Assembly: GCA_977020255.1 (NCBI GenBank) | Contig: CDROCS010005497.1 | Span: 62,001-126,000 of the forward strand | Reading direction: 5' to 3' | Length of the DNA stretch: 64,000 bases | Origin: Obrimoposthia wandeli | Taxonomy: Eukaryota | Shown: positions 1 through 53,616 of the stretch, one piece after another | Numbering within the stretch: the stretch's first letter is position 1 | Layout of the letters: the number at the start of each line of letters is the position of its first letter | Made by a program: the position numbers and the translations under genes | Notes under the pieces: model-generated | What the model was told of the DNA's origin: nothing | Databases searched by the model: none | The model's input: only the letters and a program-made list of their open reading frames with translations

Positions 1-1671
1 TTTCTCAATTTCAACTTGCTTCATCTTCTCAGCCATTGGGTCAGGCTCTTGCTTAAAGTCTTTAATCATCTTCTCTAACTTAGGATTTCTACTAAGCCTA
101 GCAATTTCTGCAATAACCATTTGAGTCATCTCAAAAGGCATTGTATTCCCTAACGTCTGTAATAAGAAACTTAACTCTTGACTTTTAGCAGCATTATCTT
201 CAGCAGTACTAATCCCAATTTCAACATCAACTCTACCGTCTAAATCATCTTTCTTAATAGTAACATATTCTGCATTAGTAATTCTAACTACTTCTTCTTC
301 TTCTAAGAACATAGCATTATATGCCATCCACTTTCTCATAAGAGGCTTCATTAAGTTCTCAGCAACATTTCGTACTAAGTTCATTCTTCTAACTGCAGTA
401 GCATCCATAGCACCTCTAGCAGCCGTAGCTGTAGTACCAATAGCATTACCACTTATACCTCCACTAAAACTCTTAGTTCCAGTCTGAGATTCAATTTCAT
501 TGTTCATCATTTCAAGCATTGTAAATACACTACCTGGAATCTGGTTGTAACTACCTTGCCAAAACTCATTAGGATTACCATTAAATTCGAAGTTCTTTCC
601 TTGTAGGAATTTCTTTCTATTAGCCTGGTCTAACGCACCTCTGTGCATACCAATTTGACTATTATTACTCTTAGCCATATTGTCAATAATACCACGAGTG
701 ATAGCTGTCTTAATCTTTTGATTGTCACCAATATTCTCTGCCAGTGCTTCCCCTACCATTTGGAAAGGAACAGCATTAAAAGGAACAATTATAAAGGGTG
801 GTCTTTTATCTGGATAAGGATTTCTCTCTAGCCTTATAATAGTATCTCCAACCCAAGCACAAACTATGTCCTCTACTTCACCATCATCATCAATATCATA
901 ACTACCCCAGTATTCATAGACAACTAACTTCTTTCTAGCATCATCTGAAAACTTAAATTCAGAGTCATCTTCCGCATTATAGTCAAAATCATCCCCTTCA
1001 TTCTTTCTAGAAACCTGATCAAGATTCTTGTATCTTCCATCAGCTCTCAGGGCACTAATACTAGTCTCATACCTATGAGCTACAAATTGACAGTTATCCA
1101 TGTCATCCATACAAGTAGGATCTATGTAAATATCTTCATTTCTACAAACAACCGCTGTGGGCTGATTTTTTATAACTTTAGTTGACATAACTACTTCTTT
1201 TACGATGTGTTCATATCCTAACTCATCAGTAATAACCGAATCAACTTCCTCTTCGATTTCTTCCTCTTCATACTCCCAGCCTGTCTGTATTACAGCAGTA
1301 CCTTCAGTAGCAAGGACTCTTAAAGCTTTCATAATAAAGTTATATCTATTAAACTTTCTACAGAACTGTGTGTTAAGTAGTAGTTCATTTTGTCGAGCAC
1401 TTGGCTCATCCTCAAATGTTACAGGATTACACTTAATAACGTCTGGGGTACTTAAAAAAGGATCTGAGATACTTGGTAGCATCCACTCTAATTGCCTCTT
1501 AATATCTTTTGATACTAATGCAGACTTTCCTTTCTCTTCGTTCCCATAGGGGTTACCATAAGTCTGATCTTTATAATCACTTACCTTATCAACCCATTCC
1601 TTCTGGAAGGTCTCTGATGCCTTAACATCAGCTTTTAAGTTGCTCAATAGATTCTTTTTATTTATTTTCAT
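1..1671 (-). CDS. Portal protein, N4 gp59-like (C-terminal end runs off the window)
   Basis: Manual translation from ATG at 1671 after an AGGA RBS: MKINKKNLLSNLKAD...GKSALVSKDIKRQLEWMLPSISDPFL...; open to position 1 (...FKQEPDPMAEK). Resembles N4-like portals. Absent from the ORF track because it has no stop in the window. Confidence 0.85.
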   Translation of the reverse strand, partial: MKINKKNLLSNLKADVKASETFQKEWVDKVSDYKDQTYGNPYGNEEKGKSALVSKDIKRQLEWMLPSISDPFLSTPDVIKCNPVTFEDEPSARQNELLLNTQFCRKFNRYNFIMKALRVLATEGTAVIQTGWEYEEEEIEEEVDSVITDELGYEHIVKEVVMSTKVIKNQPTAVVCRNEDIYIDPTCMDDMDNCQFVAHRYETSISALRADGRYKNLDQVSRKNEGDDFDYNAEDDSEFKFSDDARKKLVVYEYWGSYDIDDDGEVEDIVCAWVGDTIIRLERNPYPDKRPPFIIVPFNAVPFQMVGEALAENIGDNQKIKTAITRGIIDNMAKSNNSQIGMHRGALDQANRKKFLQGKNFEFNGNPNEFWQGSYNQIPGSVFTMLEMMNNEIESQTGTKSFSGGISGNAIGTTATAARGAMDATAVRRMNLVRNVAENLMKPLMRKWMAYNAMFLEEEEVVRITNAEYVTIKKDDLDGRVDVEIGISTAEDNAAKSQELSFLLQTLGNTMPFEMTQMVIAEIARLSRNPKLEKMIKDFKQEPDPMAEKMKQVEIEK

Positions 1672-1698
1672 ATATTATATCCTATCTTCATATGTCTA

Positions 1699-1730
1699 AT
1701 TATAGCCTACAGTCTCTTAAATATACCTTA
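1699..1730 (-). promoter_or_regulatory. Sigma70-like promoter TAAGG-N5-TTAAG-N11-TATAAT upstream of portal
   Basis: Minus strand reads TAAGG tatat TTAAG agactgtaggc TATAAT; the same spacing recurs at five other sites. Confidence 0.7.
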
Positions 1731-2174
1731 CTTAGTAGTAACAAGTTCAAAGTGAGGAGCATCATGAAAGCTCTGGTCACTAAATACATCATCACTATCC
1801 CAATCAATACCAAACCTAACGTTATGTGTAATCTCTCCAGAGGCTAGCAACATCTCCGTCACCATTTTCACTAGACCCATTAAGTAGTAAAACCTTCGAG
1901 TGTCTAGCTCTTTCCCACTAAAAGCATTAGTACCCTTTTTCCAAGGCATAATATCTACCGCCATGCTTGGATTAGATTGGTGTTTAGATTTCTTTCTAAT
2001 CCCATCCAGTGTACTCTTACCTTCCCTAAAATACTTCATCTGAGTAGCTTTAGTTCTTGCCCCCTCTAAGATAGAAAAATCATAATACTTTATCACACCC
2101 TCTAATATCTTCTGAATATCAGGGTGACATGTCTCTAATTGTTCTTTTGATTTAGTTCCAAATACGTAGCTCAT
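1728..2174 (-). CDS. Endolysin, M15-family (L-Ala-D-Glu type) peptidase
   Basis: DFSILEGAR, SKH...AVDI and DAPHFEL Zn-binding motifs; next to a holin. Confidence 0.85.
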   Translation of the reverse strand: MSYVFGTKSKEQLETCHPDIQKILEGVIKYYDFSILEGARTKATQMKYFREGKSTLDGIRKKSKHQSNPSMAVDIMPWKKGTNAFSGKELDTRRFYYLMGLVKMVTEMLLASGEITHNVRFGIDWDSDDVFSDQSFHDAPHFELVTTK

Positions 2175-2344
2175 TATTTATCCTTTTTAGCTGGGATTTC
2201 AGTTTCAGTCTCTTTCACATCAACACCATACTTATCCATCATTTCTTTTGCATATTCTTCATATGTTAATCCAGTCTTAAGGACTTCTCCTTGAAGACTC
2301 ACCAATTCATATGTTTCTGTAAATGTTTCAATTTCTTCATTCAT
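2174..2344 (-). CDS. Small acidic hypothetical protein (56 aa)
   Basis: Manual translation MNEEIETFTETYELVSLQGEVLK...; AAGGA RBS; fills the gap between holin and endolysin. Confidence 0.6.
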   Translation of the reverse strand: MNEEIETFTETYELVSLQGEVLKTGLTYEEYAKEMMDKYGVDVKETETEIPAKKDK

Positions 2345-2366
2345 TACTTATCCTTTAGTATCTTAA

Positions 2367-2783
2367 CTATCGTTTGTGTTCTACATTTTTGAACTTCTCA
2401 AAAGTTCTCATTCCACCTAGACCTAGTAGTCCACCTAAAATTGTCATTAAAGAGTTTATGTCTAGCACAGGAGGCACTGGGATAGTTACTCCAAATATCA
2501 GTACAAGCCAGAGAACAAAAGGAAAGAGTATAAAGTGACATGCTAATGCAGTCCCACATACCCATCCTATAAAAGGTCTCCAACCCGAAACAAATACATT
2601 ACTATGTTTTGCTTCTTCTTTATTTATACCCATCTGCCCCATCGCAACAGCCTGCTCTAAAGTTTTAAACTGTAACTCAAACTCGGCCATTTTAGCTGGA
2701 TCAACAATCTTCTCCCCTGTCCACATCTCTCTAGCGGAGGTAAGTATCCCTCCAACATCTATTTCTGCTATTGATAGTCCCAT
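2367..2783 (-). CDS. Holin (3TM, GTA-holin-like)
   Basis: WRPFIGWVCG motif, hydrophobic helices, C-terminal LLGLGGMRTFEK. Confidence 0.8.
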   Translation of the reverse strand: MGLSIAEIDVGGILTSAREMWTGEKIVDPAKMAEFELQFKTLEQAVAMGQMGINKEEAKHSNVFVSGWRPFIGWVCGTALACHFILFPFVLWLVLIFGVTIPVPPVLDINSLMTILGGLLGLGGMRTFEKFKNVEHKR

Positions 2784-2786
2784 TAC

Positions 2787-3248
2787 CTACTCCTCTCTTT
2801 TTAATATCTCTATTGCTACTTCAGGTAAAATCACTCTTGAAGCTTTCCAGCCCCATAGCGTTCGAGTTACCCAACTCCTAATGGTCCAATGACCTGCCCA
2901 CATTCTATTTGGTACTATGTATTCTGTACATCTTAATGTAGTCCCTGACTCCCTAACAGCATTAATAGAAGGCAAAGGTACTGTGTGTTCTGCATTATCA
3001 CCATCTATAGTGTAAGCCCACTTATGTACTTGTATCATGGTATCATCAAAGTTATATTTGACATTCCCACATAATGTAAACCTGCCGCTCTCATAAGCCG
3101 TTATCGGTGTATTAACGTACTCGACCTCAATAAAAGTTAACTGTGAATATGTGTATAAACTCAAAACTAAGAAGAGTATTCCTCCAAATATCCAAGCCCA
3201 AACATCTTTAAATGACTCATTCATAAAGCCTAATGTTGTCTTAATCAT
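2787..3248 (-). CDS. Membrane-anchored hypothetical protein in lysis module
   Basis: N-terminal TM segment; overlaps neighbours in the operon. Confidence 0.6.
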   Translation of the reverse strand: MIKTTLGFMNESFKDVWAWIFGGILFLVLSLYTYSQLTFIEVEYVNTPITAYESGRFTLCGNVKYNFDDTMIQVHKWAYTIDGDNAEHTVPLPSINAVRESGTTLRCTEYIVPNRMWAGHWTIRSWVTRTLWGWKASRVILPEVAIEILKREE

Positions 3249-3522
3249 CCTTAATTCCTACCATTGCAAAGATTATCTTTCTTAGAGGCTCATAGCTAAG
3301 AAGGACGCCTGTAGCAATAGCCATCATAGCTCCTACTATTACAGCCGAAGCTATCTTTTTAAATCCTGTGACTAGTGCATCCTTAACAAAACAAAAAGTA
3401 GCTAAGACCTCTCCTAACTCTTTTTTATTGTCTATATACCATTCAAAGAACTGTTGGAACTCTTTATGGTCTTTGGTATGTCGTCTATCATTCACACCTT
3501 CATACTTATTTTCATCTTCCAC
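3241..3522 (-). CDS. Small membrane protein
   Basis: C-terminal hydrophobic helix; AGGA RBS. Confidence 0.55.
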   Translation of the reverse strand: MEDENKYEGVNDRRHTKDHKEFQQFFEWYIDNKKELGEVLATFCFVKDALVTGFKKIASAVIVGAMMAIATGVLLSYEPLRKIIFAMVGIKDD

Positions 3523-3644
3523 CTATAATCCTTATTATACACTGTTGATACAAAGCAGTACTAAATACACTACTATTGTATATAATATTAGGTCTTTTAC
3601 ATTAAGACCGCCATAAGTTACCTCATCAACAACTTCTTTACGTG

Positions 3645-4043
3645 CTAAGTCAATACAATCTTATACAAATCTCCTGGAGATAAAGTATGAGGATTCTCAA
3701 TTTTTAATGCCTTGGCACACCATTCAGAACAAAACCATCTACTTTTTGAATGTAAATTAAATGGAAGTATTTGACTAAAAATTATCCCAGACCAATCATA
3801 TTTACTCCCTATAGTTTCACCAAAGTGAGCAAGTGCATATATTCTATCTGCATCAACTTCTATATAATCCCAATGTTCTTCTACGGGACAAATCTTTTTT
3901 GCTCTAACCTGTAAGTCTCTAGGACTAATAGAATGCCACACATCATCTATTACAAGCTCAACATGGCTATATTTGCTCTTAGTCCACAATCTTATTGCTT
4001 TATCAGTGAAGTCTCCTTCACCTTTATAAAATGCTAATTTCAT
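3645..4043 (-). CDS. Permuted papain-like (YiiX/NlpC-P60-like) protein
   Basis: YSHVEL early, then KYDW and WFCSE late: the permuted His-before-Cys order. Confidence 0.75.
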   Translation of the reverse strand: MKLAFYKGEGDFTDKAIRLWTKSKYSHVELVIDDVWHSISPRDLQVRAKKICPVEEHWDYIEVDADRIYALAHFGETIGSKYDWSGIIFSQILPFNLHSKSRWFCSEWCAKALKIENPHTLSPGDLYKIVLT

Positions 4044-45697: not shown

Positions 45698-45776
45698 CGT
45701 GGACTAGCACAACTACAAGAGTGCACCTGGCGTTGGAGTCAGGAGGTTACAAGTGTAAGCCCTGTGTCCACGACCA
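45698..45776 (+). tRNA. Aberrant tRNA-Pro-like RNA
   Basis: Perfect acceptor CGTGGAC/GTCCACG plus ACCA, GCAC/GTGC D stem, 8-nt anticodon loop containing TGG, non-canonical T loop. Confidence 0.55.
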
Positions 45777-45780
45777 TTAC

Positions 45781-45845
45781 GAAGTAAGTTGAAACGTCGG
45801 TTAACTCCCTGGGAAACGTTGGTTCGAGTCCAACCTTACTTCACC
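45781..45845 (+). ncRNA. Truncated tRNA-like RNA lacking a normal anticodon arm
   Basis: GAAGTAAG/CTTACTTC stem and canonical GTTGG-TTCGAGT-CCAAC T arm, only ~65 nt. Confidence 0.5.
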
Positions 45846-45846
45846 C

Positions 45847-45925
45847 CGTAACGTAGCTTAATATCTTAGAGCAGAGGGTCTCATGAGCCTCAAAGTACAG
45901 GTATAGAATCCTGTCGTTACAACCA
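45847..45925 (+). tRNA. tRNA-Met(CAT)-like, initiator-type C1.A72, atypical
   Basis: Loop CTCATGA, C1-A72 mismatch, ACCA end, bulged anticodon stem, 8-nt T loop. Confidence 0.6.
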
Positions 45926-46033: not shown

Positions 46034-46795
46034 ATGTCAAAAACAGTATTGCACGAATTATTAGCAGTAGAAACTTCACTAGGAGAAACTGCAAACAGAA
46101 TTACTAAAGAAACTACTAAGACGTTAGGAGAAAAACAATCTATCTTTACAGGTATGACTAAAGAAAATGAAATCTTTGCAGAAGAAGACCAGTTCAAAAA
46201 AGCAACTACAGAGTTCAAAGAAATTACTACAACGGTTGGAGAACAATTAAACTTCTTAGGCGAGAACGTTGCAAACTATTACGACGTACTTATTCAAAAA
46301 GAAGATGCAAACCAACGAGCTAAAGCTGACATCATCATAGACGGAACAACAATAGCTGCAAACGTACCATCAATCATGTTATTAGGATTAGAAAAGAAGT
46401 TAACAAGCCTATTAGGAACATATAATGCTATTCCTACATTAGATGCAGCTAAATCTTGGATACCAGCTACAGACAACTTAAAACCAGACGCTTTCAAGCA
46501 ACAACACCCAGAAGTTAGACAACAAACAGAAACTAAGAAAGAGTACATCACTATTTCCCCAGCAACTGAAAGACATCAAGCTCAAATAACTACTCAAGAT
46601 AAAGTTACAATTGTTGGCTCATGGACTACAGTAAACTTCTCTGGAGCAATTACTTCAGTAGATAAAGCAAACAAGCTTAGAAGATTAACAAAACTAATCA
46701 GAGCTGTTAAATCTGCGAGACAAAGAGCTAACACAGTAGAAGTAAACACAGAATTATCAATCGGTTCTGCATTCTTCGCCTACGTTAATAACTAA
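46034..46795 (+). CDS. Coiled-coil hypothetical protein flanked by tRNA-like RNAs
   Basis: Strong RBS, highly biased codons, LHELLAVE N-terminus. Confidence 0.75.
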   Translation: MSKTVLHELLAVETSLGETANRITKETTKTLGEKQSIFTGMTKENEIFAEEDQFKKATTEFKEITTTVGEQLNFLGENVANYYDVLIQKEDANQRAKADIIIDGTTIAANVPSIMLLGLEKKLTSLLGTYNAIPTLDAAKSWIPATDNLKPDAFKQQHPEVRQQTETKKEYITISPATERHQAQITTQDKVTIVGSWTTVNFSGAITSVDKANKLRRLTKLIRAVKSARQRANTVEVNTELSIGSAFFAYVNN

Positions 46796-47060
46796 CACCA
46801 CTGGGATATTTTAGGAGCTTATCACCCACCAAAAGATAATCTCACAAGGCATTACTTAGTAATGTTTACTACAGCTAAGTCTATATCTAATAGCTTTAGT
46901 TGTGGTAAACTTATTATCGTAATCATTTTTACCCTCGGCCCGGACAGAGTTCCAATGCTGAGTCATTCTTATTTTATTGCACCACAATAAATTAAGTCCA
47001 TATACTTTTAACAATAGTTAGCAACTTCTCGGATACAGCTTAACTGCTGATCCACACTTC

Positions 47061-47136
47061 AAGTCTTGTCGACAGTTCGATCCTGTCTCGGGCCTCCAAT
47101 TAATGGCCCGATAGCTCAGCGGTAGAGTAAAGACTT
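47061..47136 (+). ncRNA. Circularly permuted tRNA-like gene (3' half precedes 5' half)
   Basis: 3' half AAGTCTT-GTC-GACAG TTCGATC CTGTC-TCGGGCC-T-CCA, then ATTAAT, then 5' half GGCCCGA-TA-GCTC AGCGGTA GAGT-A-AAGACTT. Confidence 0.65.
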
Positions 47137-47251
47137 ATAACTTATACTAAAACAAGTTGACTAAACATATAAACAAAGTAGAACAACATACTAATTAATA
47201 GACTGCACAAGTATTTGAAATTTGCCCGCAGTCAGCAAATTAAACATGAAA

Positions 47252-47287: not shown

Positions 47288-47367
47288 GTCGTAGTAGCTC
47301 AGTTGGTAGAGCGCCTTCCCTGTAAAATGGAGAAGAGGTCGCAGGTTCAAGTCCTGCCGTCGGCACC
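47288..47367 (+). tRNA. Degenerate tRNA-like gene (Tyr-type loop CTGTAAA)
   Basis: Canonical D arm GCTC-AGTTGGTA-GAGC and T arm GCAGG-TTCAAGT-CCTGC; mismatched acceptor; enlarged anticodon loop. Confidence 0.5.
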
Positions 47368-50919: not shown

Positions 50920-52306
50920 ATGAACTACTTAAAAGCAGCATCAGCAATAGACGGATACAAAGCATCACACAAAGACCAATACCCAAAAGGTACAGACTAC
51001 GTATACTCTAACTTAACTCCAAGACACTCTAAGCACTTCGCTTACAAAGACTTCGACGGACGAGTAGTTGTATTCGGAAACCAATCAATGGTAAAATTCA
51101 TTCATGAATTATGGCAAGACACATTCTTTAACAAACCTGCTGACGAAGTAGTACCTGCACTATTCAGAAGATTATCAAACTACTCAGGGCATAAAGACGT
51201 ACAGCATTTCCATGACTTACACAGAAAAGGTTGCTTACCAGTAGTAATAAAATCCTTAGTAGAAGGTACTAAATCACCATTAGGTGTACCAACATTAACA
51301 ATTGCAAACACACACAAAGACTTTGCATGGATCGTTAACTACCTAGAAACAATCATCTCTGCAGAATCATGGCACACTATGACTTCAGCAACAGTATCAC
51401 ACCAATACAAGAAACTATTAAAACAATGGTCAGACTTAACGTGTGACGACGAATTACACTTACCATTCCAAGCCCACGATTTCTCAATGAGAGGACAAAC
51501 ATCTGTACACTCTGCAGCTAAATCTGGAGCTGGACATTTACTTTCGTTCGCTGGAACTGACACTGTACCTTCGATAGACTTCTTAGAGTACTACTACAAA
51601 GCTGACTGTGAACAGGAACTAGTAGGTTGCTCAATTCCCGCAACTGAGCATTCGACTATGACGACTGGAATCCAAGTAAACATGGACAAAGGTTTATCAT
51701 TACGAGATGCCGAAACAAAAGTATTCAAAAGACTATTAACTAAAACATATCCAACAGGACTATTTGCAGCAGTTTCAGACAGTTACAACTTCTGGGACAC
51801 ATTAACAATAACATTACCTAAACTAAAATCAGAAATTTTAGCAAGACCTATGACAGTAATTAGAAATATAGGAGATCCAACAGCTCCGGGTAAACTAGTT
51901 ATTAGGCCTGATTCTGGAAATCCTATTGATGTTATCTGTGGATTTAGAGTATTAGAAGGGGACCATACAGATGGAGTAAACAAAACACTAGTATTAGATA
52001 ATAACTATAACGTAATTTTAGACAATGGAGTGTACTATAAAGTAGATGGATATTATCACGATGATGGCTGCTGGGTAAACACTCACGCTAATGAAACCAA
52101 CATTACAGCTTCAGAAGCAAAAGGTGCTATCCAAGTATTATGGGAAATCTTTGGAGGAACTACGAACTCTAAAGGTTACAAAGTACTTGACCCTCACATC
52201 GGACTAATCTACGGAGACTCAATCACTCTTGACAGAGCTGACGAAATCTGTAAAAGATTAGAATCACAAGGCTTTGCATCTTCCAATATCGTATTTGGAA
52301 TTGGGT
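50920..52306 (+). CDS. nadV: Nicotinamide phosphoribosyltransferase-like protein, exon 1
   Basis: DGYKASH, HDFSMRG, IPATEHS, VSDSYNFW, IRPDSG, IYGDSIT; splicing restores NIVFGIGSYSFQ. Confidence 0.88.
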
Positions 52307-52590
52307 TAACTTATAATGGCCCCTTTAAGAAGTAATTCTTATCGAAAAACTTATTGAATTGCGGGAACTTTCGACAATCATAAACTACTAAACCTAGGTG
52401 GCGACACACTAGGTGGTGAGAATTAACTACTCTCAGTACAGTAAAAAGGTCTATGATCGATCAATCCGCAGCCAAGCCTCTCAGAAATGAGTGGAAGGTT
52501 CAGAGACTATCCCGAAAGGGAGTAGGCCCGTCAGGCCGAAGCAGTAAGCCCCTACTAAGGTAGGGTGATGATATAGTCCATTCAGTTACT

Positions 52591-52622
52591 TAAGTATTAA
52601 TTAAGTGCTAGTATGTTATACT
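52591..52622 (+). promoter_or_regulatory. Internal promoter for the intron endonuclease
   Basis: TAAGT attaa TTAAG tgctagtaTGt TATACT followed by a CAGGAG RBS. Confidence 0.6.
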
Positions 52623-52650
52623 TGTTAAATAGAGACAGGAGACATACAAC

Positions 52651-53616
52651 ATGACAAACAAAGAAAAATTTATAGAAAAAGCAAATAGAAAGTACAGTAA
52701 TAAATTTGATTATTCACAGTTCACATACCTCAACGCTAAGACCAAAGGGACCCTAGTCTGCCCTACACATGGAGAATTTCTTCAAAACCCTGATAAGCAC
52801 CTTACATCTAAATATGGATGTCCAGTATGTGCATTAGAAGGAAGAATAGAAACATCTACAGGGGTATCTACAGTAGGCTGCCCTAAATATACTTGGGAAG
52901 AGCAGAAGAGTAGACTGGAAACTAGGTTTCCTTCACTTACATTCACCTGTGAAAAATATGAAGTAACTACTTCAACTGTAATAGGACTATGCCCAGAACA
53001 TGGGACGTTTGAAACAACATCAGCCACATTACTTAGAAAAAATGCTAAGTTTGGATGTAAGTCCTGTGGAGTTGCTGGAGCGAAAGCCACAAGAACCGGG
53101 ACTTTCAGAGAATTTATCTTACAAGCTTCCAAAATATTCAATAACAAGTACACTTATAAGTGTGATAATTACATGAATAAGAAGAGTATAGTTACCTGTA
53201 CATGTGATGTACATGGGGACTTTAATAAATCTGCTCAAAAGCATGTAGGGGGCCAAGGTTGTCCTAGATGTAATATTGATGCCCTTATACTCCAAGGAAA
53301 ACTCCCTGGAGGTTACTGTGAAACTATATTTTCTCGCAGCGATGCATTAAAAAATAAACCTGCTACAATCTACTACCTAAAAATGGGTAGCCTATACAAA
53401 ATAGGAATAACTATAAATTTAAAACGAAGACTATCAAACATATCCTCAAAAGCTTCTATACCTATAGAAGTGATAGACACCTTTGATACATCACTATATG
53501 AGGCATACCTTTTAGAGCAACAGCTTCTAGAAAAGTATGCAGAGTATAGGACAAGTAATGAATTCTCGACAGAGCTTTTTACTTGGGATGTACTAGAAGG
53601 AAAAATACTTAAGTAA
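52651..53616 (+). CDS. Intron-encoded homing endonuclease (CPxHG zinc-ribbon repeats plus GIY-YIG-like C-terminus)
   Basis: Three CPxHGxF...GCPxC repeats; IYYLK...LYKIGIT...RRL. Confidence 0.8.
   Translation: MTNKEKFIEKANRKYSNKFDYSQFTYLNAKTKGTLVCPTHGEFLQNPDKHLTSKYGCPVCALEGRIETSTGVSTVGCPKYTWEEQKSRLETRFPSLTFTCEKYEVTTSTVIGLCPEHGTFETTSATLLRKNAKFGCKSCGVAGAKATRTGTFREFILQASKIFNNKYTYKCDNYMNKKSIVTCTCDVHGDFNKSAQKHVGGQGCPRCNIDALILQGKLPGGYCETIFSRSDALKNKPATIYYLKMGSLYKIGITINLKRRLSNISSKASIPIEVIDTFDTSLYEAYLLEQQLLEKYAEYRTSNEFSTELFTWDVLEGKILK

Follow-up and report, generated by a model that had tools for sequence, protein, structure and literature searches.

A permuted, CCA-encoding tRNA-like element downstream of DUF7873 genes in large phages is probably a sister class of YrlA RNA

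The stretch analyzed here (the window; 64,000 nt of contig CDROCS010005497.1, positions 62,001 to 126,000, in the Obrimoposthia wandeli assembly GCA_977020255.1) is part of a large tRNA-rich phage contig within an animal genome assembly. Downstream of a gene encoding a DUF7873 protein, it contains an element at 47061-47136 (+) in which the 3′ half of a tRNA cloverleaf (stem strand, T arm, acceptor 3′ strand, T, CCA) precedes the 5′ half (47105-47136; acceptor 5′ strand, TA, D arm, A, stem strand). The features of the locus are as follows.

46034-46795 (+): 253-aa DUF7873 gene, consistently paired with the RNA that follows it (Pfam PF25283, E 2.4e-61)
47018-47027 (+): 5′ strand of the predicted closing stem, TTAG-CAACTT (minimum free energy fold of 46990-47200)
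47031-47053 (+): side hairpin within the internal loop (fold prediction only)
47061-47067 (+): AAGTCTT, 3′ strand of the 7-bp "anticodon-stem" helix, pairing perfectly with 47130-47136
between AAGTCTT and the T arm (+): variable region GTC (3 nt), read from the sequence
47071-47087 (+): T arm GACAG-TTCGATC-CTGTC, 5 bp with loop TTCGATC, canonical (family helix 1)
47088-47094 (+): acceptor 3′ strand TCGGGCC, 7/7 pairs with 47105-47111 (family helix 2)
47095-47098 (+): discriminator T and encoded CCA, the latter common at this site across the family
47099-47104 (+): linker ATTAAT, with a putative RNase P cut after 47104
47105-47111 (+): acceptor 5′ strand GGCCCGA, perfectly complementary to 47088-47094
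47114-47128 (+): D arm GCTC / AGCGGTA / GAGT, canonical (family helix 3)
47130-47136 (+): AAGACTT, 5′ strand of the "anticodon-stem" helix, pairing with 47061-47067
47154-47164 (+): 3′ strand of the predicted closing stem, AAGTTG-A-CTAA (same fold)
47288-47367 (+): tRNA-like gene; anticodon loop of 8 nt, acceptor stem with two mismatches (ARAGORN "tRNA-??? (gtaa)"; Rfam tRNA, 42.2 bits)

An earlier reading made from the sequence only (the sequence-only reading) had described a 3′ half preceding a 5′ half at this site, and this layout was confirmed letter for letter, including the 7-bp acceptor and the 7-bp stem. Its claim of a tRNA-derived gene in circularly permuted order was likewise borne out: when the halves were un-permuted and joined with the upstream TTC, they formed a cloverleaf that ARAGORN called as tRNA-Glu(ttc). 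The tRNA models that it had recommended as a check gave a divided answer; beyond this call of the un-permuted join, neither ARAGORN nor the Rfam tRNA model called the element as it stands in the window. Minimum free energy folding of 46990-47200 gave -48.6 kcal/mol (z -4.0) and placed the module on a predicted 10-bp closing stem (47018-47027 / 47154-47164), which lies below an internal loop with a side hairpin. In an independent assembly of the sole public run containing this DNA, one contig spanned 47018-47500 with zero differences, indicating that the element is not an assembly join. No outer tRNA halves flank the window copy.

Near-identical relatives of the locus were not found by megablast against phages, by exact pattern search in IMG/VR, or by single-protein locus search. 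Relatives were reached through alignment of DUF7873 homologs (517 homologs), which led to 80 IMG/VR loci. A structure-blind nhmmer search found the element ~100-250 nt after the DUF7873 gene in more than a dozen loci. A structural scan revealed the module in 63 of the 80 loci; it returned 81 forward-strand modules, as compared to 2 on the reverse strand and 0-1 in dinucleotide shuffles, indicating that the module occurs far above chance. Sixty-four of the 81 matches were within 500 nt downstream of the DUF7873 gene. A covariance model (R1), with matches counted from 42 bits upward and only if they lay on the DUF7873 strand and downstream of the gene, detected the module in 84 of 86 phage loci, and the other two contigs end at the gene. 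Conservation in relatives, which the sequence-only reading had named as a check, was observed. The window copy scored 62.9 bits (E 1e-16) with R1. The module usually lies 100-250 nt past the DUF7873 stop codon; in loci L006, L047, and L083, its distance from the gene is 0.8-1.8 kb.

All six cultured phages fetched as a test carry the module. Cultured carriers include Vibrio phage D505, Rhizobium phage RHph_TM30, Klebsiella phage FBKp24, Ralstonia phage phiRSL1, Gordonia phages Ziko and GodonK, and Rhodococcus phage NiceHouse; in cultured phages the RNA falls in unannotated gaps or beneath tiny hypothetical open reading frames (ORFs). DUF7873 is rare in bacterial genomes (25 loci). The RNA was present in 21 of these; 3 loci were truncated and 1 had no match. 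Several of the bacterial loci lie among housekeeping genes on large Myxococcota contigs. The family extends over phages of Proteobacteria, Actinobacteria, and Cyanobacteria and over Myxococcota chromosomes, with DUF7873 proteins down to ~30% identity. A Pfam tally of flanking ORFs revealed no conserved neighbors except one case of Ro60 (L037, described below).

Tandem copies of one tRNA gene mimic the signature of a permuted module and are a false-positive class in searches for permuted tRNAs. R1 matches of 33-61 bits were common in the host animal genome (G000), in tandem tRNA arrays on contigs C129, C253, C2256, and others; these arrays, some of them evenly spaced, were treated as an artefact class and not as family members. 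Junctions between adjacent tRNAs in phage arrays scored mostly 14-35 bits with R1, and rarely up to 53.

To assess shared structure, we used a MAFFT alignment (A2) of 41 copies, with 16 pairs in three helices. Overall, 96% of cells were paired, and 15 of the 16 pairs were altered on both sides. The covariation score was 0.925; shuffles gave 0.218, and sliding the partners gave no more than 0.18. The T arm (helix 1) was 100% paired, with changes on both sides in 4 of its 5 pairs; the acceptor (helix 2) showed such changes in all 7 pairs; and the D arm (helix 3) was 90% paired, with all 4 pairs covarying. At the anticodon-stem position, a helix of 4-8 bp is kept through covariation in 49 loci, accompanied by a variable region of the tRNA type. 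Across the family, pairing occurs between the two flanks (29.9 cross-pairs vs. 16.2 for shuffled flanks), and a 12-bp closing stem is maintained in related loci by pair-preserving changes. Two motifs are enriched in the flanks, AGTAA on the 5′ side and ATGAAAG on the 3′ side, and may be comparable to the two strands of a loop-E-type module.

The acceptor end also has tRNA-like characteristics. CCA was found at the module position in 58 of 75 tallied modules, where ~1.6% would be expected by chance. Encoded CCA was rejected as a module-specific trait: ordinary tRNA genes of the same phages encode it in 122 of 213 cases, and 13 of the 15 ARAGORN tRNA genes in the window do so. It marks tRNA-like handling of the 3′ end, following the habit of the ordinary tRNA genes of the same phages. 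The linker is 6-43 nt long across the family. Among 71 distinct modules, 42 carry T at position -1, 42 carry A at -2, and 47 carry G at +1. Bacterial RNase P prefers U as the leader base at -1.

YrlA (RF02553) was the only Rfam family spanning a T arm, a closed acceptor, and a D arm in the order of the element. It scored 24.9 bits on the window (model positions 26-82), as compared to a gathering score of 69. Members of this family are bound by Ro60 and modified by TruB and DusA. Chen et al. 2014 (PMC4201824) defined YrlA by a 5′ Ro-binding motif (GNCGAAN0-1G), by T, acceptor, and D modules, and by location within 4 kb of rsr. The M. smegmatis member, whose acceptor has 7 bp, undergoes RNase P cleavage both in vivo and in vitro and carries CCA as a two-piece RNA (PMC4201824). 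The element and YrlA have the same order: a stem, the T arm, an acceptor-like stem that is closed in the transcript, the D arm, and again a stem. Both have T and D loops of the tRNA type. In both, the body sits on a stem made by the two ends of the RNA, a protein gene adjoins on the same strand, and phages are among the carriers. Both classes also include closed acceptors (Salmonella YrlA; Myxococcota copies of the element) and open ones (Mycobacterium YrlA; the CCA type).

There are also differences. The Ro motif was absent from the 120 nt upstream of the element in the window and was found in 2 of 45 family flanks, approximately the chance rate. Ro60/Rsr (TROVE) is absent within ~4 kb, and the partner gene of the element is DUF7873. 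No TROVE gene was present on the phage contig; both matches in the assembly were on contig C903 of the host animal. Similarity to the YrlA model covered the core only and was below the Rfam gathering score, and none of 20 phage and 14 genome loci reached that threshold. The full NCCA is genomically encoded in the element, whereas the final CA of M. smegmatis YrlA is added after cleavage. In contrast to YrlA, the element is usually located inside phage tRNA arrays, with a tRNA ~55 nt after it.

One phage locus contains both RNAs. In L037 (IMGVR_UViG_3300017963_000201, 1-4000), two tRNAs, a YrlA-like RNA, Ro60, DUF7873, and a CCA-type module lie on one strand. The YrlA-like RNA (429-565) is near-canonical and full length (Rfam, 60.7 bits), with a CGAAUG motif, a closed 4-nt acceptor loop, and no CCA. 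The CCA-type module scored 52.8 bits with R1 and matched the core only of the YrlA model (30.7 bits). The presence of both RNAs in one locus indicates that they are sister classes, each adjoining its own protein gene. Ro60 was the upstream neighbor in L037 only, among 57. When Ro60 (384 phage records) and DUF7873 (75 records) were compared by host genus, they were found mostly in different phages.

These findings suggest that the element belongs to a DUF7873-linked sister class of YrlA and is probably cut by RNase P into a two-piece, CCA-ended tRNA mimic; we assign this reading a probability of roughly 0.6. The RNA would be transcribed together with DUF7873 or just after it; no sigma-70-like promoter and no intrinsic terminator were predicted between the two in the window. 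It would fold into a tRNA body (T arm, 7-bp acceptor, D arm, variable region) carried by a stem in place of the anticodon arm, and this stem would run on into the closing helix made by the flanks. The linker, which starts with N-CCA and ends with A-T right before G+1, would close the acceptor stem in the transcript. Host RNase P may then cut at 47104/47105, and exonucleases may trim the linker back to CCA, leaving a tRNA-like acceptor end. By analogy with M. smegmatis YrlA, the product would be a two-piece tRNA mimic whose pieces are held together by the acceptor, 7-bp, and closing helices. The 3′ piece would be freed when RNase P cuts a second time, where the downstream tRNA or tRNA-like gene begins. 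The sequence-only reading had also proposed a two-piece, pre-nicked tRNA mimic, with a role as a nuclease decoy, which is conceivable. The element is probably a mimic and not junk, as proposed; the nick is more likely to be at the acceptor end (47104/47105) than in the anticodon loop.

DUF7873 is proposed as the protein partner because the RNA is genetically coupled to DUF7873 and not to Ro60. The protein may bind the RNA, and the resulting ribonucleoprotein may act in tRNA or RNA metabolism during infection. The fuller version of this proposal, in which DUF7873 is a Ro60-independent partner of tRNA-like Y RNAs and forms a ribonucleoprotein of large phages and Myxococcota chromosomes whose RNA is matured by RNase P into a two-piece mimic with a genuine CCA end, is tentative, and we consider it somewhat doubtful as a whole. 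The CCA end of such a mimic might accept an amino acid, or it might interact with enzymes that handle tRNA; one possible purpose is to guard or manage the phage tRNA pool in the face of host tRNA-targeting defenses. The AlphaFold model of DUF7873 (predicted local distance difference test score 86.8) consists of long helices and a sheet with a long hairpin. Searches by sequence gave nothing in PHROGs, NCBIfam, PADLOC, or PDB sequence profiles, and searches by fold gave no convincing match in Foldseek (PDB, BFVD), VIA-align, or the ESM Atlas (shape, features). A likeness to Cascade Cas7 in the top Foldseek rows was set aside (TM score ~0.15). No mention of DUF7873 was found in the literature, and no description was found of a permuted or YrlA-like tRNA mimic tied to it. 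An October 2026 preprint on bacterial tRNA mimics deals with other, unrelated RNA families.

Several points weigh against this interpretation. The rows of A2 were picked by a scan that requires pairing, so that the percent-paired values are too high. This choice does not affect the controls by strand, shuffling, and position, nor the nhmmer matches. CCA was paired with the linker end in 9 of 40 long-linker copies, which would disfavor RNase P. Two-piece processing is evidently not general, because in the Myxococcota chromosomal copies the acceptor is a closed 4-bp hairpin and CCA is missing. DUF7873 has no recognizable RNA-binding fold in the libraries searched. The only public run containing the stretch is not recorded as RNA and probably represents the sample from which the DNA came. 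The linkage to DUF7873 could instead reflect a cis-acting element of the 3′ untranslated region, an alternative weighed below.

The sequence-only reading had taken the element for a tRNA-like gene divided at the anticodon loop, with halves that might be joined to give a Glu anticodon or sealed by phage RNA ligases. As a true circularly permuted gene, it would lose its leader and trailer, have its ends joined in the anticodon loop (for example by a phage RNA ligase) and its linker removed, and would yield a decoding tRNA-Glu(UUC). The clean cloverleaf and tRNA-Glu call of the un-permuted join with TTC are consistent with this possibility, as are an Rnl2-type RNA ligase gene 1.5 kb downstream of the element and the absence of tRNA-Glu from the 15 tRNA genes called in the window. 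Permuted tRNA genes of Cyanidioschyzon merolae, other algae, and Thermofilum pendens likewise have the 3′ half first, a short acceptor-to-acceptor linker, a cloverleaf when un-permuted, and a likely origin in tandem duplication. However, those genes give decoding tRNAs via a circular intermediate (splicing endonuclease and ligase) and have conserved anticodon loops, whereas the element has neither a conserved anticodon loop nor a bulge-helix-bulge motif and occurs in a bacterial and phage setting. Across the family, the junction lacks a conserved 7-nt anticodon loop (U33, purine 37): only about one copy in two has U33 after a 5-bp stem, helices of 6-8 bp that absorb loop positions are frequent, and the flank sequences are unrelated and are predicted to form an ordinary closing stem instead of a processing motif. 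Acceptor and discriminator vary freely (discriminator A 23, T 23, G 20, C 9), with no isotype pattern across the family. RNA ligase is not a conserved neighbor in the Pfam tally, Rfam models found no group I intron or other known splicing motif flanking the element, and the Myxococcota copies combine a closed 4-bp acceptor with the lack of CCA. Bacteria are not known to have a bulge-helix-bulge splicing endonuclease of the kind that matures permuted tRNAs in algae and archaea. Because there is no conserved anticodon loop, the flanks form a stem, and acceptor identity is free, the element is not a decoding tRNA and not a split tRNA gene; we regard the permuted-gene explanation as very improbable, and the anticodon-loop split and the joining of the halves into a Glu anticodon are not supported. 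Still less can be said for a two-piece, transfer-messenger RNA (tmRNA)-like molecule that is charged with alanine and rescues ribosomes, to which we give next to no weight. Permuted ssrA genes of alphaproteobacteria and cyanobacteria do share the gene order (CCA-ended piece first, then the piece with the acceptor 5′ strand), an excised segment, and acceptor and P2-like helices, and some related phages (L004, L074, L097) encode a tmRNA nearby. On the other hand, no copy has G3:U70 (pair 46-95 in A2), which contradicts this reading; the element has a full tRNA-type D arm, no tag reading frame, and no pseudoknots; ARAGORN, which models permuted tmRNA, found none here; and the tmRNA genes in the same loci are ordinary, one-piece, and separate.

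The main rival is that the element acts in cis on the DUF7873 mRNA, as a tRNA-like 3′ end cut by RNase P with no separate role in trans; its job would be to part the mRNA from downstream tRNAs, or to stabilize or autoregulate the message. The constant strand, the usual spacing of 100-250 nt past the stop, the lack of a predicted promoter or terminator between gene and RNA in the window, and the tRNA at a fixed distance after the module, as in a co-transcribed array, all agree with it. However, it does not explain the permuted order and the closing stem, since an ordinary tRNA would do as punctuation. It also fits poorly with the distant modules of L006, L047, and L083, with the two tandem modules found in some phages, and with the promoter annotated (as a prediction only) between gene and RNA in Klebsiella phage FBKp24. 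We consider cis action unlikely, though it deserves to be taken seriously. A decaying, functionless relic of tandem tRNA duplication or rearrangement would account for the fact that tandem identical tRNA genes give the same R1 signature (33-61 bits in the host animal; mostly 14-35 and up to 53 at phage junctions) and for the degenerate tRNA-like pieces nearby at 45698-45925. Its position beside the same gene across phyla despite protein divergence to ~30% identity, the compensatory changes in every helix, and the lack of outer halves at the window copy speak against it. As an account of the present state, this explanation is refuted by the strand, shuffle, and position controls, the covariation, and the conservation in 84 of 86 loci, and retains hardly any probability. 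Tandem tRNA duplication is nevertheless plausible as the evolutionary origin of the element.

Several phages have two tandem modules, the second having a longer D loop (GCGG-AATTGGTAG-ACGC). In the GenBank record of Klebsiella phage vB_KpM_FBKp24, two annotations bear on the element (L086, 3293-3324 and 3509-3588). One is the promoter between DUF7873 and the first module. The other, a "tRNA-Sup-TTA", is probably a mis-call, since its 3′ half is made of the T arm and the acceptor strand that belong to the second permuted module. In the Myxococcota contigs L102, L107, L110, and L116, chromosomal DUF7873 lies amid FtsK, LolA, and AdoHcy hydrolase genes. The Myxococcota order is DUF7873, closed-acceptor RNA, and tRNA, which is tRNA-Val(GAC) where ARAGORN typed it (L112 and L116), and these copies have a conserved ACCCG(A/T/C)AG motif ~70 nt upstream of the T arm.

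A called tRNA was found within 160 nt after the module in 32 of 119 modules, and most of these tRNAs start 49-64 nt past the D arm. The tRNAs ~57 nt after the module in L022, L024, L026, and L053 have A34 anticodons (Tyr-ATA, Asn-ATT twice, and His-ATG), i.e., they belong to the Tyr/His/Asn group with A in place of G34; those in L044, L061, and L062 have 6- or 8-nt anticodon loops. Such post-module tRNAs may represent variants of the anticodon loop that evade tRNA nucleases of the host. The gap from the module to the downstream tRNA-like gene of the window (47288-47367) is 160 nt. This gene has ACC-T in place of CCA and could be a quadruplet-reading or non-decoding tRNA. Upstream of DUF7873, at 45698-45925 (+), three degenerate tRNA-like structures were visible only at relaxed ARAGORN settings; among them are a minihelix-like T arm and acceptor (~45783-45846), and R1 gave 24.3 bits at 45808-45879. 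Farther downstream, at 50920-53616 (+), the 3′ end of a nicotinamide phosphoribosyltransferase gene meets a group I intron (52297-52600, 77 bits), and after it comes an endonuclease ORF of 321 aa (Pfam T5orf172 and DUF723; PHROG endonuclease/HNH families).

Until now, a link to Ro60 has been the defining feature of bacterial Y RNAs. The element described here represents a large, easily recognized sister class with a different protein, which extends over hundreds of phage contigs, Myxococcota chromosomes, and cultured phages of Klebsiella, Vibrio, Ralstonia, Rhizobium, Gordonia, Rhodococcus, and cyanobacteria. Many phage genomes have unannotated gaps and doubtful tiny ORFs that it explains. For annotation, it carries the warning that tRNA finders miss such elements and that, conversely, junctions of tandem tRNAs mimic them. 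DUF7873 gains a first, testable role, and the phages and bacteria that carry the module provide tractable systems in which to ask what purpose is served by the tRNA mimicry of Y-like RNAs.
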